This document shows, piece by piece, positions 11,076-54,000 of a DNA stretch of 64,000 bases. Position 1 is the stretch's first letter; every line of letters begins with the position of its first letter. The position numbers and the translations under genes are program-made. The notes below the pieces were generated by a model. That model had not been told where the DNA came from and did no database searches. It saw nothing but the letters and a program-made list of their open reading frames with translations. The DNA lies in NCBI GenBank assembly GCA_964270895.1, contig OZ185435.1, one strand, 5' to 3'. This DNA comes from Podarcis filfolensis. Lineage: Eukaryota.

Positions 11076-11828
11076 TTTGAGCCTCTGCCTCCAGTCACCT
11101 CTCTTAGGCTCCTCCTGCTATGAAGGCCCACCCCCTGGCCTGAGGACTGGGACTTCTCCTGCACTCTATAGCTTCCTACCTGGCACACACTCTTTGCCAT
11201 TAGACTGGCAAGCTAGTATGAGAGGCACTCATTTCCATTGGCCCTGGGGAAGATTCCATTTGTGGCTCCATCTCATGTTGTATGAGATGGGCTTCAGTGG
11301 TTCCCTGAACCAGCTTTGGAGACAGAGTCAGGAACCTGATGTAGCTCCTAGGCCGGTGATGCTATAGTCTCTATTTTGGTGTCCTGGTCATTCTGGAATC
11401 ATGACACCTAGGGTAAGCCTGTGGCATTTCCAGTTAACAGGATCTCTCATTTCAGGGTTGAGAAGGACCTGTGCCTGGGACCCTGGTGAACTGTTTCCAA
11501 TCTGAGGGGACAATATTAGGCTAGAACAACCAACCGTGGAACAGTATAAACTAGTTTCCAGGATTAACTGGGAAACATAACATGGGAGTAATTGAAGCCA
11601 AGACACTTGTTTTGATTAACATATAAACTGAGGTCAGCCAAGGACCCAGAATCCAGACCTCTAGAATTTGAAGGGTAAAGTCTGATATTTTCATGCATAT
11701 TGTATTTCTCCTTCCAAGTTTTGTCAGCTCCAGCCAGTTGCTGTCCTGCTGCCCCAACTGTTGGACTGTTTGCCAAACAAAGCAATACTGTCCTTGCTAA
11801 GTGAGCTCAATGTATTCTTGTCCTACAG

Positions 11829-11917
11829 GCGGAAACTCCACCAATGGCCAGTGCAGCACTCTGCAGCAGCACTACAGCTCCAGATCCCAGACAAATGGCA
11901 CAGCCCCCAAAAGCTCT
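11829..11917 (+). CDS. PKP3: PKP3 exon 2
   Basis: tcctacag|GC GGA AAC...AGC TCT|gtaagt; (G)GNSTNGQCSTLQQHYSSRSQTNGTAPKSS resembles human GTSRGQYHTLQAGFSSRSQ (from memory). Confidence 0.85.
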
Positions 11918-14900
11918 GTAAGTTCAAAAACCCAGCTCTTTCTGCTGCCTATTGATTGCTAATGAACTGCGATTGTGGGTGATGATGACTGTCGTGATGA
12001 TTACCACCAGTGTTAAAGGAATCTAATTCCCACTTTTGCCCTCCCTGCTTTTGTAAAACTAGTCCCCATGGTACTATGCAATCTTGCAGCGATTGTTTCA
12101 GTAAAATATCCCAGTGACGGTGTCAGAGCCAGCTCTGCCAGCTTTTAAGATTCTGTGCAGAGCAGCATGGCTGTTAACTGAGAGCAGAATGTGGCCTGCC
12201 AGTTCACTGAGGATGGTGCCCATCAAGGGCAAATAAATGGGTGGTATGGAAAGACCCCACTTGACCTTGCCGCTGGGGTGTGGCATTTGCAGGACAAACC
12301 AAATACTCTGCATTATTTCATTTGATAGAAGAGTCTATCTCCTTTTGAAAATAAACATTGCACTCCCTTCTTTCCTCCCATTGTAGCTGTACCAACCACC
12401 AGCTGGAAAGAAAGGTTACAGCACCATGAAAACTACTAGCTGGTCCTCTCGCTCAGCGGTGGACCTCAGACCCAACAAGAGAATGGCCTCCATCAGCAAT
12501 GGCGTTGGGCCAAAGGGCCTGGCTTATAGCCCAAATTACACAATGTCTCAGTCTGCCGGCACTGCCCCCCGCCCCAGGTCTTTTCATGAGCGGAACTACC
12601 GGGGGCATCAGAACTATGACACCATGTCCCTGCGCTCCCTGCGCCTGGCAGATGGGCCAGGCAGTCCTGGGGGTGTGGATGACCACTACAGCATTGTATC
12701 TGAGCAGCTGGATCCACTGGCCCAGGCAGCTCTCTACAAAAACCGGGCAGGTGGCGGCTTCAGTAGATCCTACACCTTTGAAAGGCAGATGAGCGCCGGC
12801 TCCAATGCAGGCATGAAGGGGCCCATCGACTGGATGGATGGTGTGGAGGCACCGCAGAACAGGCCTGTCATCCGCGCGCCAGCCATGCGCACCTTGCAGC
12901 GCTTCCAGAGCAACAACCGCTCCCGCCTTAGCACTGGCACCTATGGCACAGTCCAGGCTTCTCAGGCCGGGAACTCCTATGCAGGAATGATGGAACGCAG
13001 TTCCCGTGCCCCCTCTGTGCGCAGCTTGGCTGACTCCAACCACCATTTGCAAGACCTGCGTGCCATTGACATGTACGACGGTCACAACACACTGATGTCT
13101 CAGCAGTCCTTCTCTGGAGGGTGAGTGTCCTGTGGTTTACTTGCAGGGTGTGGGGCACTCTGTTCCCAGCAGAGGTGATATAAAGAAAGAGGAACACTCA
13201 GGGGCACAGAGCATAGTGTTCTTCCTGCCTTGGTGATACTTTTTTATTGAAGTAGTTGATCATCACTTGTTTAATGCTGCTCAGTGAGTCATGTAAATGT
13301 TGTCCCTCTCTGGAAATATGCCTTTACTCTAGCAGCAAAGTACAACTGATGGTGCTTCAAGGAAGATGATAGGACTTCTTCTCTTCTTTCCCCCATAATT
13401 CCCAAACTTCATGTTAGGGTGCTTTGAATGTAACATCCTGAAGCCAAAGCCAAGGCCAGGGGTCAGCAACCTTTTTCAGTCGTGGGCCAGTCCACCGTCC
13501 CTCAGACCATGTGGGGGCCGGACTATATTTTGGAAAAAAATAATGAACAAATTCCTATGCCCTACAGATAACCCAGAGATGCATTTTAAATAAAAGCACA
13601 CATTCTACTCATGTAAAAACACGCTGATTCCCGGACTGTCCGCGGGCCGAATTGAGAAGGCGATTGGGACGCATCCGGCCCACGGGCCTTAGGCGATGTG
13701 GCAGCCTCTGTCCATCCACTTGTTTATGGCTAGTAGGGTGTTGACTTACAATGAGGGGGGGAAGTATTTGATCCCCTGCTAAGTTTGCCCATTTGCCCTC
13801 TTGACGAAGAAATGACCAGTCCATAATTTTAATGGTAGATTTATTGTAGCTGTGAGAGACAGAATAATAACAGGAAAAAACCCAGAAACCCATTCTGTAA
13901 TTCCCTTAGTGGGGGTGGGGTGGAATACTATGCTTTGCTTTCTGTTTTCAGCATATCCATTGTGGAAGCACAGAACCTGGAATCCATTCTGGTATCTTTC
14001 ATTCTGAGACTCTCCAGTCTCATAATTTTGAAGAACAAAGCATGCTTCTAGCCATTTCAGTTAGGGAAGAAAGGCACAGAACTGCAAGAACCGAATAGTA
14101 AGGGTTCAGAAAACAGAGTAAGCCTGACCAAAGGTTGCAGTTGTTACTCAGTGTGCTTTTCTGCTGTGCTGGACCCTCCTGTCCTTCATGCATGTTTGCA
14201 GTCTTCTCCTTTGCCATCTAATTCTCAATTCCAAACCCCTCTATCCCTCCCCCTTTTTTACAAAATACTTTTGGTTTTGCAAAAAAGAAAAGAAAAGCAA
14301 AACCCTTTGTATACCTCCAATCTGCAAACATGATAAAATAAAGATATTAATATTTGCTTAATATATTTGGATATATATATATTTAAGCACAGCATTCAGG
14401 GGACATTTATTAGAGCTCTATGTGAATGAGGTGAAGATGGGAAAATGCACACTATCCCCTCTAACTAGGCCTTGGTTTTCAGGTTTGATGACATTGATCT
14501 CCCTTCTGCGGTGAAATACCTGATGGCCAGTGACCCCAACCTACAGGTGCTTGGAGCTGCATACATCCAGCACAAATGCTATAGCGACAATGATGCCAAG
14601 AAACAGGTGAGGCAGCAGAGGCATATCGCAAGGCGATACTAGGAACGGGCCATGCCCAGGGCCTGAGCTTGTTTCCCAGGGGGACCAATGTGGCTTGCAG
14701 GTTTAGTCACTGATACGTCTCATTGAAAAGCCTGCAACAGCGCTCATTCTGATGCATTGGGCTCTTTCCTGTGGGAATGAGTAAGTTATCTGGAATGAGA
14801 ACAGAGCAGGCAACCTTAGGTGGCATGGCATACTGAAAAGTTCCACGCAGAGACCTGCTTTCTTGTTTCTCTCTGACAAGTGTACTACTCTTTCTGTCCC

Positions 14901-17580
14901 TGTCTCTCTGCCTCAACAGGCTCGCAGCCTCCAAGCCGTGCCCAAACTAGTGAAGCTCTTCAACAACTCCAACCATGAGGTGCAGCGCCATGCCACTGGA
15001 GCCATGCGCAACCTCATCTATGACAATGCTGAAAACAAGCTGGCCCTGGTGGAAGAAAACGGGATCTATGAGCTGATGCGCACTTTATGCGAGCAAGATG
15101 ATGAGTTGCGCAAGAATGTCACAGGTGAGAGAAGTTTGCATGGGGCAAGTTATGATGAGGCAAGCTCTCCAGTGCTTAGAGCTGCACATTATATTTGCCA
15201 CAGAGCTGCTGCCCCAAATAGTCTCCCCATGAGTAGCCCCCTGCCCTACTGTCACTCCTAGGAGTGCTTGCTGCAGCTTGGATTCTGCCTGCCTGCACTC
15301 CATGGGTTTGGCTACCACTGTTAGGAGAGCAGAAACATGATGGCCCTGATCCTTGTGGTAGTGGTCAGGTATTCCAGCAGGAGGGAGACAACATGTCTTG
15401 GGAAAACTATTTTTGGTGGCATCCCTAAGCATGGACCATAGAACCAGGCTCTTAACTCCTGTGTCCAAAAAGGTCGGCCTTACTAACACATGCAGCTGAC
15501 TTTGAACCAGGGCCAAAAACTGCAAGAACATGGAAATACTGTGAACTTCCCTGAGACCTGCGGGTATAGGGCAGTATATAAATTAAATAAAGAAATAAAT
15601 AAAATAATTTCCCAGCTCTTCTGGAGGTGCCAGGAATTGAACCTGGGACCTTCTGCATGCAAAGTAAGGGCTTGCCTACATTTGAGCAGTATTTTGCTGC
15701 TAATAAATCCACACCCCACCCCACCTTCAAATAAGACTAGATTAGCCCACACCTGCATATATTTGAATTTGTATATGAAGACCAACTTTGGTCTTTTTCC
15801 ATGCACCTTAATTGCATTTGGCCCATGAATCACCTTGCCTGCACCTGCATCATCTTTTGCACTGCACACGATACATTCACATCCAGAGCTTTTTTCTCTA
15901 TGCTGCTCCCCTCCCTTTTGTCCCAGGTCCCCTTCAGAACTAGCCGCTCTCCTACCCCCCACCCCCTGCAACTCAGCTCAAATTTTCCAGGTGTCTCATT
16001 TCTCAATTCACAAAAAGCTTGAAGGCACACTAATCTGTGAACAGAAGAAATCAGCAGGACACTAGCAACTCCCAGTTTATTGAAACACTCTCTGAGCTCA
16101 GATTGGCATCCGTGCCCATTCACAAAGAGAACTGGGATAAGCACCAGCAAATCCTCATAGAGGAAAACATAAAACCTGGCAGAATCCGGAGAGCTTCGTG
16201 GGCTGGGGGAGGGAGTTCCAAATCCTCAGATTACGCACTCTAGTTGCTCTGTATGTCATGGTGTGCAAAGGAAGGTGATAAATATAGGTGGTAGGGAGGG
16301 CCAGGGTGTGGATTGGGACCTGACTCCAGCCTGTCTGCAACTGTCTTTTGCGCTGGGAGAGAGCAAGGGCACTGAATATAGAGGTCCAGCCAACAGGAGA
16401 GATTACATTTGCTTCTGTTACAAAAGGGCCTTCCTAATCCTGCCCAACAGGCTCTGATTGTCTAATCTAATACCAGGCTAATGGGAAAGTTAGGTCTAGG
16501 AGCTATGATGCAATGAGCTTTAACGCTTATTACAAGCATGGTGGAGTCTGTGAAAGTGGCTTTAGCTGAATACAATCAGAGGATGGAAAGAGTAATCCCC
16601 AGATATCACAGCCCAGGGCATACCTCATTCTGTGCATGAGATTAGCCTTTTGCTGCTGGTATATATGGATTGGGGGTGGGGAGGAGACAAGACAACTGCA
16701 TTCTTGCCCGCCTGTAGCTGTGTGTGTGCGCGCACACACGCTGATCTCCCACTTTTTGCAACCCACATGACAAAATTTATAATATGTTTTGTGGGCATGT
16801 TTCCTTACCTCTCCTGTATACAGGGTATCCTACTGAGACATGTCATAGGCAAATCAGTAATCTGAAAACATTTAAAGCAAACATTGCACTGATGCATTTA
16901 TTGATTTGTTGTTCCACTTGTCCCAGTCGGACAGGGTGAATTGCTGTGATGTGCAAGGCTCGCTTTCTAAATCAGACAAACTTGTTCACTTTGCTAGCTT
17001 TTACGTAATAGTTCCCTTCCCTATAATCCAAATCCTTCATCATCACCAGTGCACAATCTCAGTCTGGATAAATCCCATCCAAATCTGCACCATGCCTTTA
17101 GTTTTCTCCTGAAGCAGGTTAAAACTCACTCCTTTTATCATGCCTGCCACTCACTCTTTTATGGGAATTTCCTCCCTCGTCTTCTTTATCTTCTCTCACC
17201 CAATTACTTGCCTAGCCCTTTCATACTAAAATCTGTATAAATACAGATTTCTTCCTCTAGAACTGCAACATCTTTTCCCCTGGTTTATGTCTTAGTGCTC
17301 CCAATCCAATCCCAACATGAGGTGTATACAGTTAGCTTTGTTTCATGTGTGAATGAATATTGGCTCTTGGAAGCACTCTTGTGGGCTGAACTCTCATTCC
17401 TTCTCTGCCTCCACAGTAACGCAAACTCTGTGAGAACCAAGCACTCACTTATCCTGATTTATCTCGTTTCTCCATTAAATAGAGCTTCCCCAGTAAAATT
17501 TTGATTTCTCCCCATTGCCTATTGTGTTACTCTGTTTCTCACAATGACTATGCATTTTTTCTCTTGGGCATATTTTAATA

Positions 17581-17618
<38 letters not shown>

Positions 17619-18670
17619 CTGCTTCCTTGAAAATTGTATCTAGAATATCTGTTGATCCTACTAACATAGTGGAACTGGGGGTCTATGCACACCAGTACTG
17701 ACACTTTTCTTGCCCTGCCCCTTACCTCAGCAGCACCTTAATGTGCTGGGCAGTGGCGTAGCGTGGGTTGTCAGCACCCGGGGCAAGGCAAGTAATTTGC
17801 ACCCCCTAACCCGTGGATTTGCGCCCCCTAACCCTAACCCCCAGATGTTGTGCCCGGTGCGGCCAGCCCCCCCTGCACCCCCCACGCTACGCCACTGGTG
17901 CTGGGAGCCTGGTGGCTGCTCTGATTCCAGCCCTTTACAGTCCTCCTGCCAGTGCTGGCATAGAGTAACCCTACTCACCTGTGAATTCAAGGGGGGAGCT
18001 CGTGGTTGCATTTGCCAATCAGCTTACCCAATCGGAGCAGTGCCTGATGAGCCCATGTCAGAACTAGGTGAAGAGGGAGCCCAGTGGTTGCAGCCCAAGG
18101 AACTAAGTGGTGGTGGGCATTGGGGGGCTGGTTTGTGCTGGGGGGAACTGAGGGCAGATGGCCAAGCACTCCCCGCCAAAAGATGGTGCTGGGCCTGGCT
18201 GAGGATCTGGTCTGTTTGTTGGTGTAGAGCGTCCCAGTAGAGGTAAAGGGAAAAGAGCAAGCTGGTCTGGACAAAGCTGAGCAAGTCAGACATTATCCTG
18301 TCAGTTCTGCAGGAAAGATCTCAGGTTTGAGGAACTGCAGCAGGGAAGAGGTTAGATGAGTTCCTGGAAGAACACGGTTGACACATGGCAGAGCCTGCAG
18401 GGCTGTCTTGCTCCAACAAGTTTGTGTGACTCTACCATTCTTGTCTTTGTAGTAAAGCATCCCAGTAATGTTGACAGTCTTACAGGGCTTGGATCTGTAC
18501 AAGTTTCTACATGGCGTCTGTCTGCATCTTTCTCTTGCTGTCATTTCTTGGAGGAGTTGCTGGGGCTGTTGTTTGGTCTCATCCTGTCACTCAGGCTGAT
18601 TTGGGTGGTTAGCAGATAACAGCTCAACATTCTAATATTTTCATCTATGGAGGCCCCACTGAAATTAGCA

Positions 18671-18750
<80 letters not shown>

Positions 18751-21700
18751 ACACACACACACTGATATTTGTACTGGGATGGAACCTTCAAATGATCCAT
18801 TTGCCACAAGGAATCAACACTTCAAGCACCCGTTCCAAAATATCTAGGTATACCCTTGGAAACCATATGAATAGAAGGAAGTGCTGCCACCACAAGGAGA
18901 TCAGAATATGTCCCCCTGTTTGAATGGTGCATTTTTGTTCATTTTGAAATTTCTGTAGTTATGGATTTGAGGTTTGAAAATGTGCCGGAACAAATAGATC
19001 TACTCTCTAAACAAACAAACAAAAAAAAACACAAAACCACCCAGCATTTTATATATTTAAACAACCACAGCATCAGTACATCATTTTCACAATACTAATG
19101 TAGATAGAAAATGTTCTTAGTTTCATTTGATAGGTAGGAAAGTAATGTCTTCTTACTTATCCCAGGATATCAGTCCAAAGAGTTTCGTGTATGTATATTG
19201 GAATCCTGAGGCCACCTTGCCCATTGAACAAAAGCATACAACTGAGTGGCAAATATAGCTATTCTTTTGAAATTGCTTCTTGCAAAATTTGCAGAGCAGA
19301 TACTTGGATTTTCAATGCTTTGTTATTTTATCCCTTTGGAACTGGTTAATTGCTTTGCAGGGTTTATAAGAAGGTTTTGAACATGGTTGATTGATATTTG
19401 CTTTTTTACATTGATTTTCCAATTCACTTCAACTGTACTTTAAATAGCATAGTGTGGGAGGCTGCTTGCTAGCTACTCTTAATGTTTAAAGGGATAGCTG
19501 TCTGGAGATATCAAGACCAACTTCAAGGAAACACCCTATACAGTACATAGAACCCCAAATCAAATGAAGTATGATGAGTTCCAGTAAAACCATTCAGCAG
19601 ATAGCAAGCCATGTGCTATTCAGAGATTCATAGGAAAGGAACATATAGCAAGCTGCCTTATATCAAGTCAGAACACTGGTCTGTATAGCTCAGTGTTGTC
19701 TTCACTGACTGGCAGCAGCTCCCAAGGGTTTCATATGGGGGAGATTTCCAGCCCTACCTGGAGATGCTGGGGATTGAACCCTGGGACCTTTCTGCATGCA
19801 AAGCAGATGCTCTGCCACTGAGCTACAGTTCTTCCCTTTATGAAAAACTGAAGAAAATAAGGGCCTGGGGCTTGAGGTACCTTGTTTCACAGCCCTGCTC
19901 AGAGAATAGGTGCGCTGGGTGACCTTGAGAAAGTTGCCCTGTGCCAGCCTGGTGACATGGGGAAGCCACCGTGGCAGATTGCCATGTTTCCACATGACAA
20001 GTATTTATGGGAATGCTTTGAAACACCTTTTAGGCCTGGGTTGTCCCAGGAAGTGGCAGGCCAAGTCAAGGGATGTCAGGGCCTTCATAGGACTGATCTC
20101 TGCAACCTGCTGTTTTGCTGGCGCATGTCAGGAAATGTTCCTGTAAACTGGGCCTCAGTTGCCTATCTGCGAAGCTAAAGTATGAGTGGCCTAACTTGCA
20201 GGTTTATTCTGACGATAAGTGTGTAAAGACTGTGAAGCATTTTGCACGTGATGATGATTTAATAGAACATGGGAGCCACCTAGGCATGAAAAAAAAAACA
20301 CTACTTCCTGCTTAGTTCCTCAGGAAGCTGTGAGTTTCCCCATCTTGTGGAGCAGTGGTTTCTGTAGTGAAGTTTCCTTACACATCCCTGTCTCATTGCT
20401 CTGCAGGCATCCTCTGGAATCTGTCTTCCAGCGATAACCTCAAGGACCGCCTGGCCCGTGACACGCTGGAGAAGCTCACAGACCTGGTCTTGATTCCCCT
20501 GTCTGGGACAGGCAATGCTGCTCTTATCCAGCAAAATGCCTCAGAGGCAGAAATCTTCTACAATGCTACTGGCTTCCTCAGGTATTTCTCATTACTAAAT
20601 TAAAGACATATTCCATGGCTATTGGATCCTTATAATACCTTATAGCTTGGGAAAGCTATGCATGATGTGGCAATATTTCAATATCCTCGGTGAAGCAATA
20701 TTAAAGAAACAGAGGCAGCGCTGCTTTTACACTGTGAAAGCTTCCATGGCAGGTCAAAGTGGTCCATAGTGTAAGCTGGCACCAGTGTTGTCATTCGCAC
20801 TCTGTCCTTCTCTTAGTACATTGCTGCTGACTAAGATGGCATGAACAATGAATTGGTGCACCATCCAGGACAGAAGCAAGGGGTTGGGAGGGGACTGTTA
20901 AACAATGCACTTTGGTTAAGCAATGTTTAACTGTTAAACAATGCACACAATGAAACGGCACTTTTGATTTTTAAAGCCAAGAACGTCACACTTATTAGCG
21001 GTGTCTATGAATAGCTTATGGGGCTGTGTTGTGGATTGTAAAATGGGCCAGTTTGACTGACAATGCAGCCCTGCCCATTTCTCTTTGCATGGATCTCATT
21101 TGGCTGCCCCTGACAGTGAGACTCAAAGTGCAGTCCTAACTATGTTTACTCAGAGATAATTTCTATTGAATTCAACAGGCCTTGCTCTCAGGTAAGTAGG
21201 GTTAGGTCTTCAGCCTACTTTTGGGGTTCCATTGTCAAGATCATGTTCTTTCTCTGCCTTATACATATACAGCTGCCAGGTCAAGCAGAATAATTTACCC
21301 GAGAGATGCTGCTTCCCTCTGATATGTACCTGGCAGAATCTCCTGCTTTCTGTATTTAGTATATTAATTAGTTTGACCTTTTTAAGATGTGATGGCAGGT
21401 CTCAGGAGACAGGAATATTATTCCCTGTGATGACATGCTTTTGTGTTTCCCTTCTAGGAATCTTAGCTCTGCCAGCCAGCAAACTCGTCAGAAAATGCGT
21501 GAATGCCATGGGCTGGTAGACTCCATGGTCAATTACATTAATAGCTCACTAGAAGTAGGGAAGTCAGAGGACAAGGTGAGTCCTCCCCTTGTTAGCTGGT
21601 TGTCTTGTAATGTGCTGTGGCTGAACCATTATCTACACAAGGCCAAGAGATCTTTATTCCAAGGCCAAGTTCTCTGTGGTTATTCTTGTACATGTAAACA

Positions 21701-24700
21701 ATTGTGATGTGGAATGATTTCTCCCTAAATCATTGAGGGCCGTCTTCTTAAGCCGAGGTTGTGGTTTCATTCTTCTGTACCAAGCTGGGCGATGCTTTTG
21801 TTCCTTACATCCACCAGATCTGTTCTTGTCAGGTGGTGGCAGAGAAGCAGCAGACTTCTAGATCCCGGCTCATGTTCTAATCAAGAGTAATTCTGTTTTG
21901 GAAATTACTCTGTTTTTAAAGAGAGCATGCAGAAGGCATCTGTTTCTTAAGCCATCTTAATCATAATACAGGAAGGGCAAAACATACATCAATTATCCAT
22001 GGATGCTGCTGGCTTTCAGAGTATTATTCTCTGGTATGACTGCTTCATGCATGTGTGGTGTAGTGGTTAAGAGCGGTAGTCTCGTAATCTGGGGAACCGG
22101 GTTCGCGTCTTCGCTCCTCCACATGCAGCTGCTGGGTGATCTTGGGCCAGTCACATTTCTCTGAAGTCTCTCAGCCCCACTCACCTCACAGAGTGTTTGT
22201 TGTGGGGGAGGAAGGGAAAGGAGAATGTTAGCTGCTTTGAGACTCCTTAAAGGGAGTGAAAGGTGGGATATCAAATCCAAACTCCTCCTCCTCTTCTTCT
22301 TCTTCTTCTTCTTCTTCTTCTTCTTCTTCTTCTTCTTCTCTGAGAGAGCCAAGAGTAGGTTGATAGTCTGCCTCAAGTAGGAGACCTCCCCCTAAATCGG
22401 TGGGGAGAACCTTTGCCCCCTCCCCCCATATATTACTGTATAACAGCTGTCATCATCACTGGCCCACTGGCCATGCTTGCTAGGGCTGATGGGAGTTGTA
22501 GTTCAGCAACTTCTGGAGGACCCAAGGTTCTCCACCCTTGCCATAAGTCAAAACTTCCTTTGTTACTTTTCCTGACATGAGCTCTTCACACAGACTTTGG
22601 GAAGCAGTCCAAAGACACGGCAAGCCACTTCACACATTACACATAGACAAAGCAAGGTCTGCCAACAAGTGTACACTCAGATTGGTGCTACGGCCAATCA
22701 CAAGGCGTGTGTGTGTTAAATGTGTTTTTTACACTTTTCAGTTTAGACATACATATGGAATTTTTGGTGTACACCCAAAAATGGAAAGTGTAAAGCAACC
22801 CTTATTCATGTAGTGTAGTGAACAGAGCATCAGACTAGGGCTCGAATGTCCTTGGTTCAGATCTGCCCTTAGCAATGAAACTCGCAGGATGATCTTCAGC
22901 CAAGCACTGATACTTGGCTAACCTACATCACAGAAGACCATGTATGCTATAATGGGGACCTTGGAGGAAGGGCAACATAAAATACAAGAAAGAATAAAAG
23001 TCGTATTAGCTTGTAAGTGGTCAGATAAGAGTATATTGAATTCTTCCATTAAAATTCAGAGTATCTGCAGCAACAAGTCAGCTAAAATGTGATGTGTGGG
23101 TTTAAAAAGACTTGAATTTGACTGTTTCTATACATCTAAGTAAAATAATCTAAGTTTTCTGTAGACCATGAAATAATGCATTTTTCTGTGCCTGGGCTGC
23201 ACTGGTTCAATACAATCAAATACGCTTGGTTGCTCCTTGGGTCAGAGCTGCCTGGGAATCTCCATTCCTAGCCTTTCTCATTCTTGGCAGAAGTGTAGTG
23301 CAGATGTCTCCAAGCACAGATGTAGCCCATATCCCTTATCCTGACTCCAAAGCCAGTGAGGAGTCTTCTTGTAAGCTGCTTCCAGTAAAAAACTGGAAAG
23401 GCAAAATATAAATTATGTGTGTGTGTGTATGCATAATATTTTACATTTGGGGCTTCTCCAAATTTTTGCCTGAGGCAGCTGACGAGAAGAATCAAACACA
23501 AACAAAAATACATAAAATACTGAAATCTACATAGAACAGCATCTTATAATACAATCCACGGCAACCACTTAAAAACATAATTCCTTAAGGGCTTGCCAAA
23601 AGAAAGAAAAGGAAATACTTTGCATTGGAAAATTTGCTGTAAATGGTTCGTTTAAAAGCACACCCCGCTTTTGTTGTCCCTACAGAGTGTAGAGAATGCC
23701 GTCTGTGTACTGCGCAACCTCTCCTACCGTCTCTATGATGAGATGCCTCCTTCTGCACTCCAGAGACTGGAAGGCCAAAGGAGGGGCGAGGGGCCAACCA
23801 TGACTAGCGAGCTGGTTGGATGCTTCAGCCCACAGGGCAGGAGAGCTCGAGAGGTGAGAGGGCAAATGGTGTTATTATGGGGGGTAGAAAGAAGGGCCTG
23901 GCAGCAAATGTTGCTTAAGGTAAGGAATTGCTGCATTGTGTTTTTAATATTGGGTTGGGAGCTGCTCAGAGTGGCTGAGGAAACCCAGCCAGATGGGTGG
24001 GGTATAAATAATAAATTGTTATTGTTATTATGTTAAGAGATGGTGAAGTGAGCCTATGAAGGTTGTTCATCTGAAGTCTGCATAGCTTAATTTGTGCCCG
24101 GGCTCTGCCCAAACATGTGTTTTTATTGTTGGCGCTCATCCCCCACCCTCAGAATATGAAGTAAGAGTTTGTTAAAGTATCCCTGAAAATGTGACGACAT
24201 TTTCCTTGGTTCTGAGTAACTACAATGAAACCCCCAATTTCAGAGATGAACTTTCAGATCAGTAGTTGTTGCCTTGATCCTCATCATGCCTGTTGCTCGA
24301 TCTAAGCACTAGGATAGAAGTTGCTTTTCAGGGTGTGAGGGTGACATCCCCCAAGGAGATCCAGAGCATTATCAGTGGAGGTGTAAGCTCCTTCCAGTAT
24401 TTTCACATTGAATGCTGGGAATTAATGATACAGTGAAGTGAACACATGCAAAGCAATTATGAAGCGAGTAAGATCCCGAAATAGATTGAAGTGGATTTAA
24501 GGCGTGAGAAGCTGTGTCCATAGAAATGGATGACAGCCATGGTGGAAACAGTGCATGAGCTGAGGTCTGGGCGAGGTATGAAGGGGGTGATATGGTAGAA
24601 AACGGTTCTCTAGACCCCCATAGAATGGTCACTGAACATTCTCTCTCTTTCCCTCCCAAGCTCCACATGAACTCAGACATTGTGACTTTCACAGAGGTCT

Positions 24701-27700
24701 CTAAGGATCCCAAAGGGATGGAGTGGCTGTGGAACCCTCAAATTATAGGAGTGTACAACAGGCTGCTACAGAGATGTGAGCTAAACAAGCACACCACGGA
24801 GGCAGCCTCTGGGGCTCTTCAGAACATCACAGCAGGAGACCGGAGGGTAAGGTTAACAGCTTGAAACATCCCACCAAGAGTCTTGTTGGGTACACTGGAA
24901 TAAAATGGTGTGAAATTAAGCAGGGTGAATGCGGCTCAAGAATGTGTTCTCAGTCTATCACTTAGAGGGTTGTTTTTTTAAGATGGCAAACTTTGAAGAC
25001 TAGCAAGAAACTAACAACTGTTGAACTGAGGACTTTCCTACCCATTGGTGGAATATTGTATATATTCTATTGACTTATACACTCAAGGGGAAGGCTCTGA
25101 GCATTTCCCCAGCTTCTGTTTCGTAATACTGACACTGCCACAGCCTAAAGGTTTCCTAAACAACATGAAGAGAAGGTGCCTGTGAAGGAACTTCCCTTGC
25201 AGGCTGTGCCTGCCTTACCTTCCTTAGACCTGAACAGGCACTGCTGTGAGAATTCACTCTCCATGTCACAGATGATGAGAAGAAAGGCATTCATAGGTGG
25301 CTTGTGCAAAATTTGAAAAGAGATGACAAGGCCTCCCTTACCTACTTGAATCCAAAACATAGCTAGGACAGAAAAGACTAAGAACCAATAGATCATACAG
25401 CACTGGGAGTAGATGAAGGGGAAGGCCAGACAGACTTCTCTGTTTGCAGTGTCCCAATACTTCTTGTAGGTATATAGGTCAATAGTTCTTAACCGTTTTG
25501 GCCCACAGACCCTTTTGAGGATTTGATGAAAGCTATAGACTTCCTTCCCAGAAAAATGCACATAAACACACACACATGCACACAAACGTTTGTTGCAATG
25601 GAGGGGTGGGGGTTTTTTGCACTTTGTTCACAGACTTCCTGAAGCCCATCCATGGACCTTTGGTTAAGAATCCCTAATGTAGGCCAATGAAAATATTTAA
25701 ATAGTTTTGGAAGTGTACTTTGAAGGAGAAGGAATAGCCAAATATCAGTGCCACTTCTGTCATTTGTCATAACCAGCTCTCCCCAATTCACAGTTGGGAG
25801 GAAAGCTTCCCGTTCTCTTTTCTCCTCACCCCTGAAGAATAACCTGATGCTTTCTGTGCTGTAGCACTAAATTGCTGTGGAAACCTGCCATGGAGGCATC
25901 TTAAACACAAGGGTTTTTGATAAACAATGTTGTAGCAATTAGCAGAGGAAATGTGGGAATCTCTCTCCCCACATCTGCAACTTGAGCTCAGATGCTTTAT
26001 TGACTTGGCTAACAACTCATCCTCTTGCTGGCTCCTGTTTCATTGTAGTGGGCTGGTGTCCTCAGCAGAGTGGCTTTGGAGCAAGAGAGGATCCTGAACC
26101 CAGTGCTGGACAGAGTCCGCACAGCTGACCATCACCAACTTCGTTCACTGACGGGACTGATTCGGAATCTCTCCCGGAATGCGCGCAATAAGGATGAGAT
26201 GTGTGAGTGTCATTCCAATTGGAAAATATAGCAAAGGTCACCATCCCAGGACCTGGAAGAAAGCTGGGAGGCACTGTCCTCCATGCAGAATGACCTTGCC
26301 TACTCCATGCACACAGTGTTTCTGGTGCGTGTCCCATTCCTTGGGGCTTCACCTATAGTCACCTGCATCACTGATCAGTTTTGTTTTTGATTTGCAGCAA
26401 CCAAGGTGGTGAGTCATTTGATCGAGAAGCTCCCAGGCAGCTCTGGAGAGAAGTGGCCTCCAACAGACGTGGTTGTCAACATTATTGCTGTGCTGAACAA
26501 CTTGGTTGTGGAAAGCCCTGTTGCTGCACGTGACATTGTCTACTTTGATGGCCTGCGCAAGCTATTCTACATCAAGAAGAAAAGGGACAGGTGGGGAAGA
26601 CCTGGGGATTCCTCCTCCAATTCCATATGCTGAAACCACCAGTTGAATTCCCAGAACTCCATATTCAGTCACATTTTAGGCCATCTGGCTGCTTTATACC
26701 AATTGCAAGGGTGTGAAATTAGTCCACCTGCTGCTAAACAGTACGTCCTCCTGTCTAAATTTCTATTAAGGGGAGTGTTTGTGGATTTGCAAAGCTGTGA
26801 GTCTGTTCCTACAGCCCATGCCCATTTGTTAAGACAGACCCATTTTCTTCCAGAAGTGTAGCCCAAGCCTATTGGATGTATCACTGAATTTAGTAGGGCT
26901 TAGTCCTAAGTACGTGGGAGGAATTCAGCTGAGTTGTCCCCCCCCCCCTCTTCCTCTATGCGCTTAAATTTGCTCTGGAAGATGGGGGGAGCCCCCCAGA
27001 ACAGGTTTAGGGGGCACAAGGGGGAAGGAGAGTAGCTAAATCCCACTGCACAAGCAGACCTTGTTCCTTGTGTCCATACCCCACTTAGCCTTATGTGGAA
27101 TTCCTCACTATGTGTCTAAGGGTTGCTACCTTAATTCTCAGTGGTTCACTAATAGACATGATGTAACCTAGTATAAAATCCACCAATAGTTTATGAAGGA
27201 AGAGAGTCTATGTCTTAAAGTGCACTTGCAATGTGTTGTGACTGTTTTTATTCTCCAGCTCAGACAGTGAGAAGTCGTCGAGAGCTGCTTCCAGCCTCCT
27301 GACCAACATGTGGCAGTACAGCAAGCTTCATCGGGACTATAAGACGGTATGTTCCTTCCTCCCAATTACGTAGTGAACTTACAGGGGAAGAACTGACTTC
27401 CTGCCCAGTCTAGAGGGGGAAGTATGGTTGCCCCTTCAAGTCCTGCAGTGTGAAAGCTTGCACTCCTGGACATCCACATCACAAGAGAAATGACTTCATA
27501 GGGTGCCTGTGCTGCAATATGCATGAGTAGATTTCTGATTCTAGAAGAGGGAGAAGAGGTATCTTCTAGATATGATCAGCTACAAAGGCCAGCACGCCTA
27601 TATTAGTAGTAGTTTTCTGGAAGAATGAATTTCAGTAAGTATAGTTTGTCATGGAGGCGTAAGAAAACATATACCTGCTCTACGCCCCTATTTTGAATCA

Positions 27701-28310
27701 CTATTAACAGTATGGGAGCCCACCCTATGCCCTTTTGCATCTAACTTTAACAAGGGATGCTTAGTGGGTACCTGCTGTGCTTTGGGTTTAGCCCTATAGT
27801 ACTGAATAGGAAAGTGACAGAGATGTGCTGTTTGTTCAGCTGCCATTTTGGCCTTAGCTGAGGATATTGCCCTAAATAGATCAATAACCTATAGTTTTAG
27901 TCCAGGAATCATGGCACTTATCTAAGGTGTCGGGAATGTGTGTCCTCCAAGGGCTTGGCAAGTGCCACTTGTTTTTAGGGCTCCCCCTTATTTTAAATGT
28001 TTGAACATTTTAGCACACTATTAGAACATAACACATCACCCTTATTTCTCATAGTGGGGGGCTTCCATTTCAGACATCAGGCACAATAAACTTCTCTTAT
28101 GAGGGAGGAAGGGGCACCCCCTGCTGCAGGTCATTCTCTTCTGCAGTATCACAGATATGAATTCTAGATCGGCAGTTCTTTTGAGAATCTGTGCCATCTT
28201 GGGTTTTATATCAATAGGGCACTGGGTGGGTGGAATGATGTGCCCTTGTGATACTTTTCTTCTGTGTTTTACAGAAGGGCTATCGAAAAGAAGACTTTGT
28301 TGGCCTGTAA
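11829..28310 (+). CDS. PKP3: Plakophilin-3, coding exons 2-13 (5'-partial): join(11829..11917,12387..13120,14483..14606,14920..15124,20407..20581,21458..21575,23686..23853,24661..24846,26049..26202,26398..26590,27259..27346,28275..28310)
   Basis: All introns GT-AG with consistent phases; 2270 nt ending in TAA. Translation has the PKP3 head (SWSSRSAVDL, RAPAMRTLQRFQS, RAPSVRSL), armadillo repeats (FDDIDLPSAVKYLMASDPNLQVLGAAYIQHKCYSD, SVENAVCVLRNLSYRLYDEMPPSALQRLEG) and the C-terminus KGYRKEDFVGL*. Tail-to-tail with SIGIRR, as in human. Confidence 0.97.
12387..13120 (+). CDS. PKP3: PKP3 exon 3 (head domain)
   Basis: ccattgtag|CTG TAC...GGA GG|gtgagt; contains ORF 12426..13124. Confidence 0.96.
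13457..13693. mobile_element. hAT MITE, one end truncated (same family as 57856..58108, opposite orientation)
   Basis: Starts caggggtcagcaaccttt; interior is the reverse complement of the 57856 copy; second TIR missing. Confidence 0.85.
13749..13892. mobile_element. Tc1 transposon terminal fragment
   Basis: TA|caatgagggggggaagtatttgatcccctgct...gtgagagacagaataataaca resembles fish/amphibian Tc1 termini (from memory). Confidence 0.7.
14483..14606 (+). CDS. PKP3: PKP3 exon 4
   Basis: ttttcag|G TTT GAT GAC...AAA CAG|gtgagg; FDDIDLPSAVKYLMASDPNLQVLGAAYIQHKCYSDNDAKKQ. Confidence 0.97.
14920..15124 (+). CDS. PKP3: PKP3 exon 5
   Basis: caacag|GCT CGC...ACA G|gtgaga; ARSLQAVPKLVKLFNNSNHEVQRHATGAMRNLIY. 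Confidence 0.97.
15540..15668. mobile_element. L2-like 3' tail (+) abutting a tRNA-head SINE fragment (-)
   Basis: gagacctgcgggtatagggcagtatataaattaaataaagaaataaat, then ggaattgaacctgggaccttctgcatgcaaag as in the SINE at 19630. Confidence 0.55.
17584..17615. repeat. (GT)n microsatellite
   Basis: Read directly. Confidence 0.95.
17751..17897. mobile_element. 147-bp hAT-type MITE
   Basis: TIR cagtggcgtagcgtggg/cccacgctacgccactg; perfect 8-bp TSD gtgctggg. Confidence 0.9.
18675..18762. repeat. Compound microsatellite (TC)n(AC)n
   Basis: Read directly. Confidence 0.97.
19630..19836 (-). mobile_element. tRNA-derived SINE with CR1-type 3' tail
   Basis: Minus strand reads gtagctcagtggcagagcatctgctttgcatgcagaaagg...ggttcaatccccagc (A and B boxes), ending in a CR1-like taaggcagcttgctatatgttcc tail. 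Confidence 0.8.
20407..20581 (+). CDS. PKP3: PKP3 exon 6
   Basis: ctgcag|GC ATC CTC TGG...CTC AG|gtattt; ILWNLSSSDNLKDRLARDTLEKLTDLVL. Confidence 0.97.
21458..21575 (+). CDS. PKP3: PKP3 exon 7
   Basis: cttctag|G AAT CTT...GAC AAG|gtgagt; NLSSASQQTRQKMRECHGLVDSMV. Confidence 0.97.
22053..22339 (+). mobile_element. tRNA-derived lizard SINE with (CTT)n tail
   Basis: tggtgtagtggttaagagc A box, gggttcg B box, CORE-like gctgggtgatcttgggccagtcac, tail atcaaatccaaactc followed by (ctt)n. Confidence 0.85.
22812..22990 (+). mobile_element. Old CORE/MIR-like SINE remnant
   Basis: gtagtgtagtgaacagagcatcagactagg...gatgatcttcagccaagcac...aacctacatcacag. Confidence 0.5.
23686..23853 (+). CDS. PKP3: PKP3 exon 8
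   Basis: ccctacag|AGT GTA GAG...CGA GAG|gtgaga; SVENAVCVLRNLSYRLYDEMPP. Confidence 0.97.
24661..24846 (+). CDS. PKP3: PKP3 exon 9
   Basis: ctcccaag|CTC CAC ATG...CGG AGG|gtaagg; EVSKDPKGMEWLWNPQIIGVYNRLLQRCELNKHTTEAA. Confidence 0.97.
26049..26202 (+). CDS. PKP3: PKP3 exon 10
   Basis: cattgtag|TGG GCT GGT...ATG T|gtgagt; WAGVLSRVALEQERILNPVLDRVRTADHHQLRSLTGLIRNLSRNARNKDEM. Confidence 0.97.
26398..26590 (+). CDS. PKP3: PKP3 exon 11
   Basis: tttgcag|CA ACC AAG...GAC AG|gtgggg; TKVVSHLIEKLPGS...FDGLRKLFYIKKKRD. Confidence 0.97.
27259..27346 (+). CDS. PKP3: PKP3 exon 12
   Basis: ttctccag|C TCA GAC AGT...AAG ACG|gtatgt; SDSEKSSRAASSLLTNMWQYSKLHRDYKT. Confidence 0.96.
28275..28310 (+). CDS. PKP3: PKP3 exon 13 (last coding exon)
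   Basis: ttttacag|AAG GGC TAT CGA AAA GAA GAC TTT GTT GGC CTG TAA = KGYRKEDFVGL*. Confidence 0.95.
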   Translation, partial: KGYRKEDFVGL

Positions 28311-46400: not shown

Positions 46401-48038
46401 AAAAGACAGATTTATTCTAGCACCACATTGTTAGATCATCCTCCAAATTTTGCAAGTATCTCCATTCACAAGATGCACATGCAGAAGTAAATCAAAGGTT
46501 TTCAGAGTAAAGATGTGCATGAACTAAATTATTCACATTCTCCAGTGCCAATTCAATTTCTTCCTGCAAGCGCGCGGGCATGTTCATTTAGACTTTTTGT
46601 AAAACACTCTGGAATATACTGTTAACTGAGTCATTTGCTGAATGTTGCTTTAAAATACACTGAGGCTCTAATCTCAGAATTGCTCCATCAGCCTATGGAA
46701 ACTTCCAGATGGAGGAATTTTAAAGTGTTCAAGCATGCCAAAACAGCTGAGTTGCTTGGGGGCAGCCTAACAGTACGTTTGTTTTGGTGTGCAGAACCAT
46801 TTGAGGCTGTGACTGATTGAAAACCTCAGAAAAGTTTCTATTGTCTGCTGGTGCCATCATGTGGCAATTTTCTGCCATCAGATTCACTGATGACGCCATC
46901 ATAAAATTGCTCTTGTAAACTGAGCCCCTAAAGCCAGCATGGAGCAATACTGAGGGCACTAAAGGCTGTCTTTATATTAAACTCCTCTAGAGACATGGTA
47001 AGTCTGGTTCAAAGCCCTTTTTAGCAACCCTACTACCAGTTAGAGCAAAAACATCTTCTAAAGTCTAAGAAGAGGATCAGGCAGGCTCAGCCGAGATTCT
47101 TGAATTCCAAGTTAAACAGGAGAAACTTATTCAAAAGAAAAGGAAGGCATCTAGATACAGCATAAAAGCAAATACTCTTATCATCCCAGCTAGACTTCAG
47201 TCTATCAGATGGCCATGCATGGGCTAAAGTAAATTACTCTATTTTTTAAATGAGAACAGTTAGTTTCTATATAGAAAATTAAGTCTTGCTTCTTCCTTAA
47301 AGAAGGAAAGCCAAGCTGAGATACCCAGTTCATAAATTCTCAGAGGGTCATACAATACTTCAGAATTTTGAAGCCATCTTAGTTCAAAACTATGTTTCTT
47401 CCCCCCCATAACACATTTGCCTTTGCACACATGCCAAGAGTGATCTGAACAGTGGCACTACAAAGTGAAAAATGTGGACTGAATTATAAACTGAATGTAT
47501 AGTGAAGCTGTCACACCTCTATAAACTCACTGTGGGTCAAACTCTGACCAGATTCCATGCTACCCACATCCTCAATAGACCATACTGAATCCTGTACATT
47601 GGACCTAAGGATGTAGTTTCTTACACACACACACACTGTTCCATTCCAAGACACACACATAATGTGTGAAATGGCCCTTAGCATCTTACATACAACAATG
47701 GAGAAATGAAATGATGATGCTGAGCCATGGATCATTTCCAGACTGTAATTAGAAAATGTAATCCAAAACACTTAGGCTACTTGAGTCTCAAGAGGAGGCA
47801 GACAGAATATAAATCACATTCAATTCCTCAGCTGCTGCACAATCTCAGATTTATCTAGTTCTGCCATTTTAATGACAAATGTACAAAGCAAATGCAAGCT
47901 CAGTTATCACACTTGCCCCTTCAGATAAGAAGCCCTTCTAAAGATAATTAAATTAAAAAGAGTTTAAAGTATTGCATTCATGTTTATTTGTCATCTTGTT
48001 AACCAAAGTGCAGAACTGCTCTGGGGTGGGGTCAAAGA

Positions 48039-48079
<41 letters not shown>

Positions 48080-51000: not shown

Positions 51001-54000
51001 CAATCTCCCTTGCACAGTGGGTTCACTGATGATTCCTGCCTCCATTCACCATGTTTAGGAAATGTAACTAGACAAATTGCTGTGTATAACCTCTCTTTCA
51101 AGGCTGGTTCTGCAGTTCTGATTTGACTTGAGAAAACAATGAGAAATTCAGTAAGGACTATAGTAGGAAAGACAGAATATTCAGGTTATCTGGAAAGCAT
51201 GTCATGTCCCATAATAGAGAAATGCCCAGGATAAAGGGGTATGCACATCACAGAAGTGCTGAATATGAGATATGGTATTAATTATTAACTTTTGAAGTCC
51301 TAGTGCCAGTACTTTAATTATTCTCACTGCCTGTTCAGAGTCCAGCACAGTGCTGTTCTTCCCCCTCTATCTTTCATACTGTCAACTCATTCATCCATGC
51401 TAAATATTTTCAGCATATGTGACACATTTTCAGCATATGTGAGCGTGTGTTTTTTTAATGAAGAACTTTCTGAATCCTATTGTGGAAAATAGGGAGTTTA
51501 AGGTGCAAATGTCACATTGCATTAAAAACTAGAATATGTCACAGGTACTTATCCCCAATTTTCCATTCCCTTACATTCCCTTAAATTCTGAAAAGGAGAA
51601 CTAGGCCATCATGGCCATCATTTTTTAAAATGTAAAGGCTCTCCCTTCTGTAGGTACTGCTGTGTGTATTGGACTCATTTCCAAACTTTACCTTTATTTA
51701 AAAGGGAGAACAATACAAAAAATATTGTTTTTAGTGCCCATATCCAGTCCTTAGCCAATTCAGGAGAACTTCCTGAGAAACCAGCAACTACCATCCTTAT
51801 CTTAATGAATAAAAAAAAATTGAAATCCTATACAAATCTTCTCAGAAATAAGACCTACAGTGCCTAGCAAGCCTGACTTCCAGGTCTCAGGATGTGTGTG
51901 CAGGATTTCAGCTCAAATGATGTATGATCTCCCTCTGACCATCTTTAGCTAATTTATGTTTCTAATAGCATAATGAAGTGTTCCAAAATGGTGATCCATC
52001 CTAGTTTAAGTGCACTATAAAAGATTAAGCAGAGACAAAAACACACTTATCTGTCCCAACAAGTCTGCTAATTTTTTAAATCTCAGCATATATATTTTTT
52101 TAAACCTGTCTTTTCCCATTTCAACTCTGACAATACAACTAGCAAATAGGGGACGGAGTGAGCTTATCTTGGTAGCTTCAGGTACCTCTCACCACATTTT
52201 AGGTACTATCACTTGTTATCACAGCTTTAGAAACATTAAGTCTTTTCTCTCTCTCCTAAATTGTCTCTCTACCACAGTGAAGCCTTCGTCAGGTTTATCT
52301 GTTTACACAGTTCTATCAGCCAGTAAAGTGAGATGAGCGCCGAAACCCCTGAGTCGTCCGTGACAGTCAGGGGTCCCTTTACCTTTATATGTCATCTTAA
52401 ATATAACATAAAATGCAGAGAGGGCTCAGAAAGAGCTACGTGTCTGCCATTTTCTCCCAGGCAAAAGGAAGCCCTCTTCAGCAACAGCCACACATACAGT
52501 CACAGACATCAGCCCGCCAACTTCTGGTTGACAATGCATAATTTGGATCATAGCACTTGATAAATTGGCTCACATCCCCAGGGCTTATCTAGTGCCATAA
52601 CTTATTTGAGTATGATCAGTACCTTATGTTTAGGTGAAAGGGGACAAAATCATGCCCTACATAGTTAGATACTTCACAGCTGCTCTGTGTCTAATGAGCA
52701 ACATAGGAGCCAGACTTAGGCAGACAAGTGGCCCATCTTGAAACAGTGGCAGTCCTGCTTCTCCTGGGATGGGCCCAAGAGGAGACATCAGTGTTAGGTT
52801 TGGGATCCAAAGGCATGTTTGTGAATTCCCACTTCTTTCACTCACCTGCCATGACCAGCCGGACAGTGAAGGAGCTGTTTCTCTGATCGTTCAAGTAGAG
52901 CGTGCAGGTATAGTTGCCTGCATCGCTGGCATTGGCGTGCTCAAAGGTGAGGTATGTTGTTGTGTTCTGCAGTGTGCTGTGCAGGTGGCTTAACGCAGTG
53001 AAGTTAAGCAGATGACAGTTTTTGCTCCACTGGATGCTAAAGTTTGAGGTAGACTGAAGAAGCTGGAGGCTCTGGTTATCCAAAGGGCAGAACAAATGAT
53101 TAACCTGTTCTTGCTGGGTCCAAATGGTGTGATCATAGAAGTGATCTGGGTCCACACACGATAAATTAGATGAAACCGTCAGCGAAAAGAATTCTAAATA
53201 AAGCAAAGCAGTTAAATTGCAACTACTTCTGTGATGCCTAATCCAACCTACATTTCTACAGCAAGCACAGAATATGCAACTCCAACAGCAACCAAGTCAT
53301 TCATGCCCAACCAGGTCATAGACACTGCCCCCCTGGCTGAACTTACTTTTAATATGCATACCATGTGATGGCTCCTGAAAGACTGTTTACAGTGAATTTA
53401 CTATAGAGAAGAGAGATAAATATTTATCATCCTGATAACAAGATCAGCTAACTATGTGATTCTAACTAGAACTCTATCTATGCCATAGATTCCTTATTTA
53501 TAATGAACAGAGAACAAATTGATAATAAGGTAACTAACACAATGATCACATTCTACAACCCTCCTCATAACACACACACCACACAAAAAATGCTAGGAGA
53601 GGCAATGCACTGAAGCAAGCACTATAGAAAAAGAAAAGAACAGGGGGGAAACCTAGCCAACCAAATACTGCTAATGTATAAAAAAAGCATTGGTGATATT
53701 CACTGGTCATTTGCACACCTGGAAACTTTTTTAAAAAAGATACTATAATTATAATAAGTGCTTCAGAGCTACAAATTCAAAGGAAAAGCAATCAACCTTC
53801 AAAAAAACCTGTACAACACAGTACATTTTGCTGAGCAAAAAGTTGCATGTCTGTATACTTGTTAGTATTTGATATGAACTGGAACTGGAACAATGAAGTA
53901 TATGAAATGGATGCACTTGTTTGTCCATGACAGTGAACCTCCACCTTATTTGATACCACTGAGAAATAGATAGAGGTTCTGTATCTTTTCCAGTGCTCAG

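Follow-up and report, generated by a model that had tools for sequence, protein, structure and literature searches.

The 64,000-nucleotide stretch analysed here (hereafter the window), from contig OZ185435.1 of the Podarcis filfolensis assembly GCA_964270895.1, carries a SIGIRR gene that encodes two immunoglobulin (Ig) domains instead of one. The additional N-terminal domain (Ig1) is specified by an exon on the minus strand at 53193-52846, and the canonical domain (Ig2) is the only one left in mammals. SIGIRR, or IL-1R8, has been studied as a checkpoint in signalling by IL-1, IL-18, IL-33 and TLRs and is the proposed co-receptor for IL-37; we know of no accepted evolutionary explanation for its architecture of one Ig domain and no signal peptide. 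We regard as highly probable a joint explanation in which the Podarcis gene is a two-Ig SIGIRR orthologue with an ectodomain equivalent to domains D2 and D3 of the IL-1 receptors and a probable brake function, in which the two-Ig state is ancestral, and in which single-Ig forms arose through the take-over of a start codon. The predicted product is a 559-amino-acid (aa) type I membrane protein with a cleavable signal peptide, a heavily glycosylated Ig1 (D2), Ig2 (D3), a transmembrane helix, a TIR domain of the Cys/Leu type and a SIGIRR tail.

The Ig1 exon is 348 nucleotides (nt) long and open in a single frame without any stop, with ttatttAG before it and GTgagt after it. It is in phase 1 at both ends, the first two bases finishing a codon and the last base opening the next. 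A sequence-only reading of the window had proposed just such an open exon, with good splice sites and in frame with the rest of the gene, and its coordinates and phases turned out to be right: ten coding exons, all introns having AG/GT ends, translate stop-free as one uninterrupted open reading frame (ORF) of 559 aa. The 115 residues encoded by the Ig1 exon, again stop-free, include C46, C69-P, W89-x-K91-x-C93, L-x-F and D-A-G-N-Y-T-C130; all the motifs listed in that reading are therefore present, although the first two cysteines lie 22 residues apart and not 23. Eight N-glycosylation sequons fall in Ig1, out of 14 across the whole ectodomain. The peptide passes the curated cut-offs of the Pfam models Ig_2 (E 8e-7), I-set and ig, and when used as a query it matched full-length SIGIRR at E 1e-28 or better, which argues that the exon is not a chance ORF. 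The other high scores in this search came from multi-Ig repeat proteins. A chance ORF or a generic Ig match was rejected: setting aside the Logan sequence P0001 and P0002, a short piece of sequence of a related lizard, the sole full-length specific match was a SIGIRR protein (P0005).

We also considered an exon extended upstream of 53193, where the frame remains open to 53296. This was rejected, as the window offers no in-frame ATG for it and exon 1 is spliced to 53193 in all RefSeq models. Read-through upstream of this position was seen in one Ensembl-type P. muralis model (P0237) and in P0001. The latter, a 1245-nt Logan contig obtained from a related Podarcis sample, has an ab initio ORF of 198 aa that continues into intron sequence on either side of the Ig1 exon. 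An indel in the intron sets it apart from the window, and it looks genomic or unspliced rather than like an isoform.

The acceptor site of this exon has a history of its own. The ancestral acceptor, CATCAG/CC (splice junctions are marked here by a slash), is found in Anolis and Emydura, and close variants of it occur in Python, a gecko and the gharial. In lacertids this site was lost with a deletion of about 7 nt, and a new TTATTTAG located 24 nt upstream is used (window 53170-53200, minus strand). The shift turns the former polypyrimidine and branch-point tract into codons, adding EFFSLTVS to the mature N-terminus. Lacerta and Zootoca have an alternative acceptor, CTGACAG, that gives rise to 'Q/VSSNLSC' isoforms, and the Podarcis window reads CTGACGG at this place.

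Public gene models contain the same structure. The window protein aligns without gaps to 559-aa proteins named "single Ig IL-1-related receptor", with 99.6% identity in P. raffonei, 99.5% in P. lilfordi and 99.1-99.3% in P. muralis (the P. raffonei and P. muralis models being from RefSeq), and the exon is therefore already annotated. This had been anticipated as a possibility, and two-Ig models exist in RefSeq for Podarcis, Lacerta, Zootoca, Anolis, Pogona, Python and other squamates. Isoform X1 of Lacerta agilis, 97% identical to the window protein, reads ...TAALQ/EFFSLTVSS...RLVMA/DICSV... and has the same exon 1-to-Ig1 and Ig1-to-Ig2 junctions as those proposed for Podarcis. Two-Ig models of 511-561 aa bearing the same product name were found in Anolis, Sceloporus, Pogona, Elgaria, Hemicordylus, Varanus, Python, Rhineura, Sphaerodactylus and Eublepharis. 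Ig1 is part of all RefSeq proteins of P. muralis and P. raffonei and of the first-listed isoforms of Lacerta, Zootoca, Anolis and Pogona, and the exon is present in every full-length lacertid gene model examined.

Transcript data and substitution patterns point in the same direction. The Logan contig SRR6291288_12662 is a spliced two-Ig lizard mRNA from a species other than Podarcis: its 2814 nt comprise a leader of 338 nt, an uninterrupted 552-aa ORF with signal peptide, Ig1, Ig2, transmembrane helix and TIR domain, and a 3' untranslated region, and it falls in a 90% identity cluster with the SIGIRR of the agamids Pogona and Phrynocephalus. Ratios of non-synonymous to synonymous substitution rates (dN/dS) were calculated by the Nei-Gojobori method (NG86) for the 28 pairs formed by the window, the agamid mRNA and the genomic sequences of Lacerta, Zootoca, Anolis, Python, Sphaerodactylus and Gavialis; Varanus was left out, having no gene of the exact product name on record. 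The median for the Ig1 exon was 0.23 (range 0.06-0.36), compared with 0.31 (0.17-0.66) for Ig2, 0.07 (0.04-0.17) for the TIR domain and 0.63 (0.16-1.55) for the signal peptide. Among lacertids only, the Ig1 values lie between 0.06 and 0.14, which indicates that the domain is translated and constrained. Ig1 thus appears to be constrained at least as much as the canonical Ig2. Both checks that had been suggested on related species came out in favour of a functional exon, as dN/dS is purifying and not neutral and the frame is intact in seven squamates and the gharial. In an alignment of 34 ectodomains, one per species and ranging from sharks to lizards, the residues that never vary are L67, C69, L71, W89, K91, C93, F117, D124, G126, Y128, T129 and C130, and C46 occurs in at least 90% of the rows.

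The claim that the exon encodes an Ig domain of IL-1-receptor type is borne out by the Pfam Ig models together with phmmer and Foldseek matches to ectodomains of the IL-1R family. A phmmer search of PDB sequences retrieved IL1RAPL1, IL-1RAcP, IL-1R1 and IL-18R-beta, with the F and G strands of Ig1 aligned on the end of D2 and Ig2 aligned on D3; a two-Ig SIGIRR is therefore a D2-D3 receptor without D1. An AlphaFold model of P. raffonei residues 24-258, built from the 34-sequence alignment, has a mean predicted local distance difference test score (pLDDT) of 85 and forms two beta-sandwiches. Its best Foldseek matches in the PDB are the ectodomains of IL1RAPL1, IL-1R1, IL-18R-alpha, IL-1RAcP and IL-18R-beta at 17-20% identity, with TM-scores that are low because the inter-domain angle differs. 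C46, C69, C93 and C130 reproduce the four-cysteine pattern of a D2-like domain and presumably pair as disulfides. IL-1RAcP, IL1RAPL1 and IL-1R1 are thus the best matches in both sequence and fold, but they have three Ig domains (D1-D3) where the lizard protein has no D1, and the lizard TIR domain differs further from that of IL-1R1 in having lost both residues needed for signalling.

The double Ig IL-1R-related molecule of teleosts, DIGIRR, was reportedly described by Gu et al. in 2011, and the sequence-only reading had called the lizard protein a DIGIRR-like receptor. SIGIRR is defined by human Cys222 and Leu305, which replace Ser447 and Tyr536 of IL-1R1 (PMC3482685), and the mammalian protein has a single Ig domain and no signal peptide (PMC9448908), while the DIGIRR TIR domain retains the Ser and has Arg-Tyr changed to Ala-Leu (PMC9448908). 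No fish is known to carry both, and DIGIRR occupies the SIGIRR locus (PMC9448908, PMC9020223). In the window, the TIR domain has the Cys of SRCRR (residue 365) and the SIGIRR-type Leu, in motifs identical to those of chicken, ostrich and turtle; at the sites where DIGIRR has Ser and Ala-Leu, the lizard protein has Cys and Cys-Leu. A PKP3 flank and a long C-terminal tail are likewise those of SIGIRR. The N-terminal half departs from the mammalian description, with two Ig domains preceded by a hydrophobic leader exon, and agrees with DIGIRR, which has two Ig domains and a signal peptide. Likeness to DIGIRR therefore holds for the ectodomain and signal peptide but not for the TIR domain, with its SIGIRR-type Cys in place of the teleost Ser. 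From sequence comparison, the window gene is the SIGIRR orthologue in a two-Ig state: it sits at the SIGIRR locus, its ectodomain and leader resemble those of DIGIRR, and its TIR domain resembles that of SIGIRR; the name 'single Ig' describes the mammalian state and not the whole gene family.

The relationship to both relatives can be given more exactly. Ig1 is homologous to that of teleost and sturgeon DIGIRR (the sturgeon domain being 53% identical to the window exon), which sits at the same locus (PMC9020223); a 523-aa Trachinotus protein, of the same length as trDIGIRR (PMC9448908), was retrieved in our family search and included in the 34-row alignment. DIGIRR differs in the SRSRR Ser, in its reported location in the Golgi or cytoplasm, and in being treated by the literature as fish-specific, whereas the lizard protein belongs to an amniote. 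Orthology with mammalian and avian SIGIRR (IL-1R8, TIR8) is indicated by PKP3, Ig2, the transmembrane helix, the Cys/Leu TIR domain and the long tail, and over the shared part bird and turtle SIGIRR are 70-74% identical to the lizard protein. Bird SIGIRR, of about 413 aa, has neither the signal-peptide exon nor Ig1 and starts at the Met that ends the lizard Ig1 exon; relative to mammalian SIGIRR with its one Ig domain and no signal peptide (PMC9448908), the 559-aa lizard protein has a signal peptide and eight further sequons.

An Ig1 profile built from the alignment was scanned against 252 fetched clusters of SIGIRR-family proteins, and a complete Ig1 was found in 126 of them, from sharks, sturgeons, most teleosts, a newt, the gharial and squamates. 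No bird or turtle model was positive among the 108 further clusters of a search containing these groups. A protein search with the gharial Ig1 region gave 15 matches, none from a bird, turtle, frog or mammal, although this absence is weak evidence by itself because the method depends on shared 5-residue words. The earlier proposal that squamates kept two Ig domains, with loss occurring later in other lineages, is supported as to retention and losses but was too narrow, as the gharial, a newt, sharks, sturgeons and most teleosts retain the domain too. Sharks already pair two Ig domains with the SIGIRR-type Cys. The box 2 Cys (SRCRR) is shared by sharks, bichir, gar, Arapaima, coelacanth, amphibians and sauropsids, and Ser (SRSRR or SHSRR) appears only in sturgeon and most teleosts. 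This distribution suggests that Cys may be ancestral and the DIGIRR Ser derived or reverted, and it fits poorly with the published order of steps from IL-1R to DIGIRR to SIGIRR.

How the single-Ig form came about is suggested by the position at which it starts. The Ig1 exon ends in ATGGCAG/gt (52852-52846, minus strand), and bird (MADLCSV..., MAEFCSV...), turtle (MEDLCSV...) and short squamate (MADLCS...) proteins all begin at the equivalent of this Met, 7 nt before the Ig1 donor. The first coding exon of the ostrich likewise ends in ATGGCAG/GTAAG, preceded by GC-rich sequence; upstream of this start, neither a tblastn search at word size 2 with E values as high as 10 nor a local DNA alignment revealed any Ig1 remnant, the alignment scoring 18 where shuffled sequences gave 19 +/- 2.4. 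In the turtle Emydura macquarii both the signal exon and the Ig1 exon can still be recognised. The latter (L008, 9765-10054) has become a pseudo-exon: a Tyr codon is replaced by TAG and the canonical Cys by Tyr (FCPLD to FYPLD), and about 25 nt are deleted. Within this remnant a new Met serves as the start of the RefSeq model. Two emydid turtle mRNA contigs of about 3 kb (SRR27880523 and SRR27880527; L009 266-1944 and L010 249-1930), 97% identical to the Terrapene protein, still splice exon 1 to the Ig1 exon, where a small deletion shifts the frame. As a consequence of this frameshift, the ancestral start opens a 128-aa upstream ORF and the 417-aa main protein starts at the terminal Met, which ribosomes may reach by leaky scanning, by reinitiation or on transcripts with another start site. 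The Ig1 exon would thus decay and its last Met codon would become the start of a single-Ig form without a signal peptide. Since the gharial retains Ig1 and turtles are sister to archosaurs, the losses in turtles, birds and mammals would be mutually independent. We consider it fairly likely that two Ig domains and a signal peptide are ancestral in jawed vertebrates and that the single-Ig form arose at least three times in amniotes (mammals, turtles and birds) by the same route of Ig1 decay and Met take-over, the frameshifted upstream Ig1 ORF of turtles being an intermediate. If true, this would overturn the textbook order, which treats the DIGIRR of fish as a 'transitional molecule' on the way to SIGIRR.

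As for function, the lizard protein is, by analogy with teleost DIGIRR and mammalian SIGIRR, most likely a non-signalling brake on IL-1R/TLR signalling. In the complexes of IL-1-beta, IL-1R1 and IL-1RAcP (PDB 4dep and 3o4o, both among our matches), D2 and D3 are the parts of the accessory chain that touch the receptor with its ligand. The D2-D3 ectodomain of the lizard protein would dock on ligand-bound receptors of the IL-1 family in place of the accessory chain, and adaptors would be sequestered by its TIR domain. Hypothetically, a SIGIRR with both D2 and D3 could be a more complete competitor, in the role of a pseudo-accessory chain, than the mammalian form with D3 only. In teleosts, DIGIRR is characterised by negative regulation of NF-kB induced by IL-1-beta or LPS, and in fish its knock-down raises IL-1-beta-induced cytokines (PMC3705552).

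Several points weigh against this account. The inclusion of Ig1 in Podarcis rests on RefSeq models and on the mRNA of another lizard family, and the mammalian loss on the literature (no signal peptide, PMC9448908) and on the N-terminus of the human protein. The single-Ig models of axolotl, caecilian, gar, bichir and coelacanth may be incomplete annotations and not true losses. The proposed function of the two-Ig tetrapod protein is wholly a conclusion by analogy. Finally, short models starting at the terminal Met exist for Python (X2), Pseudonaja (X2), Heteronotia, Paroedura and P. lilfordi (412 aa), so that lizards may also make a single-Ig form and 'constitutive' may be too strong a word for Ig1.

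These short squamate and P. lilfordi models also lend some weight to the view that Ig1 is an alternative cassette, with lizards making both forms and the single-Ig one perhaps as the main product, as in mammals. Being symmetric, with phase 1 at both ends, the exon can be skipped without loss of frame, and shark isoforms of about 457 aa (P0124, P0125, P0127 and P0128) do exactly this, omitting Ig1 while keeping the signal peptide (junction KPD/SRCNLPP), from which we infer that the exon acts as a cassette in cartilaginous fishes. No exon-skipped lizard isoform turned up in our protein searches, however, and the low lacertid dN/dS of Ig1, along with its presence in the RefSeq proteins of P. muralis and P. 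raffonei and the first-listed isoforms of four other genera, makes this alternative rather unlikely for lizards. A second alternative, that the exon is part of a different transcript or a pseudo-exon in decay that homology-based prediction carries along, as in turtles, is very improbable and already largely refuted. It is true that the turtle mRNA keeps its Ig1 exon after breakage and that RefSeq models are predictions, but the frame is intact in squamates and the gharial under strong purifying selection, with the structural residues all conserved, the agamid mRNA contains one continuous two-Ig ORF, and no further gene intervenes between exon 1 and the exon for Ig2. We give hardly any credence to the lizard gene being a separate DIGIRR paralogue, an idea that its two Ig domains and signal peptide, shared with teleost DIGIRR (PMC9448908), might suggest: the PKP3-linked locus contains a single gene, the Cys of its TIR domain is that of SIGIRR, the remainder resembles bird and turtle SIGIRR at the identity given above, and in the literature no fish has both types and DIGIRR lies at the SIGIRR locus (PMC9448908, PMC9020223).

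Reviews present DIGIRR as a fish-specific transitional form (PMC3705552, PMC9020223, PMC7144542), and a 2025 survey of more than 400 species reported at most one Ig domain for the majority of SIGIRR-like proteins. In the open-access literature we found no explicit statement that reptiles or tetrapods have a two-Ig SIGIRR. The exon, the protein and the domain matches are all public, so the sequence feature is not new, and with the Ig1 exon already annotated we describe neither a new gene nor a new mechanism; the two-Ig form in amniotes, amphibians and sharks nevertheless seems to be unrecorded in the searchable literature. Taken with the turtle intermediate and the common start position, the public models of sharks, a salamander, a crocodilian and squamates offer a testable account of the origin of the mammalian form. 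They also supply natural pairs of D2-D3 and D3-only receptors with which to investigate the binding partners of this orphan receptor's ectodomain.

The remainder of the gene was located by listing ORFs and by tblastn with squamate SIGIRR proteins, the splice sites being set by eye, and all of it lies on the minus strand. Exon 1 (62796-62697) contains the start codon and hydrophobic signal peptide and ends in phase 1 at CAAG/gtgaga, its product being 100% identical to residues 1-33 of the Lacerta agilis protein. Downstream of the Ig1 exon, which is exon 2, the two halves of Ig2 are encoded by exons 3 (50840-50651) and 4 (48520-48390), and the transmembrane helix and juxtamembrane segment by exon 5 (46171-46028). 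The TIR domain begins in exon 6 (45837-45694) and continues through exon 7 (43776-43674), which holds the box 2 region with SRCRR as recognised by motif comparison, and exon 8 (43090-42940), to end in exon 9 (38444-38270), where motif comparison likewise places the SIGIRR-type Leu. Exon 10 (35334-35141) includes the stop codon and most of the long C-terminal tail (residues ~461-559), which is 70-87% identical to the tails of squamate SIGIRR.

The assignment of the exon to SIGIRR at a PKP3-linked locus, as first proposed, stands: Ig1 is in frame with eight downstream SIGIRR exons, and tblastx with the ostrich PKP3 region placed the Arm-repeat gene PKP3 on the plus strand at 11134-28310, convergent with SIGIRR. 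An Arm-repeat PKP3 gene also lies 3' of SIGIRR in Lacerta, Emydura and ostrich. The gene order in ostrich is ANO9-SIGIRR-PKP3, and ANO9 was not found within the 64-kb window. A (TG)n/(CA)n microsatellite at about 47990-48060, in the intron downstream of the second Ig2 exon, appears in translation as HTHTHT and CVCVCV ORFs.

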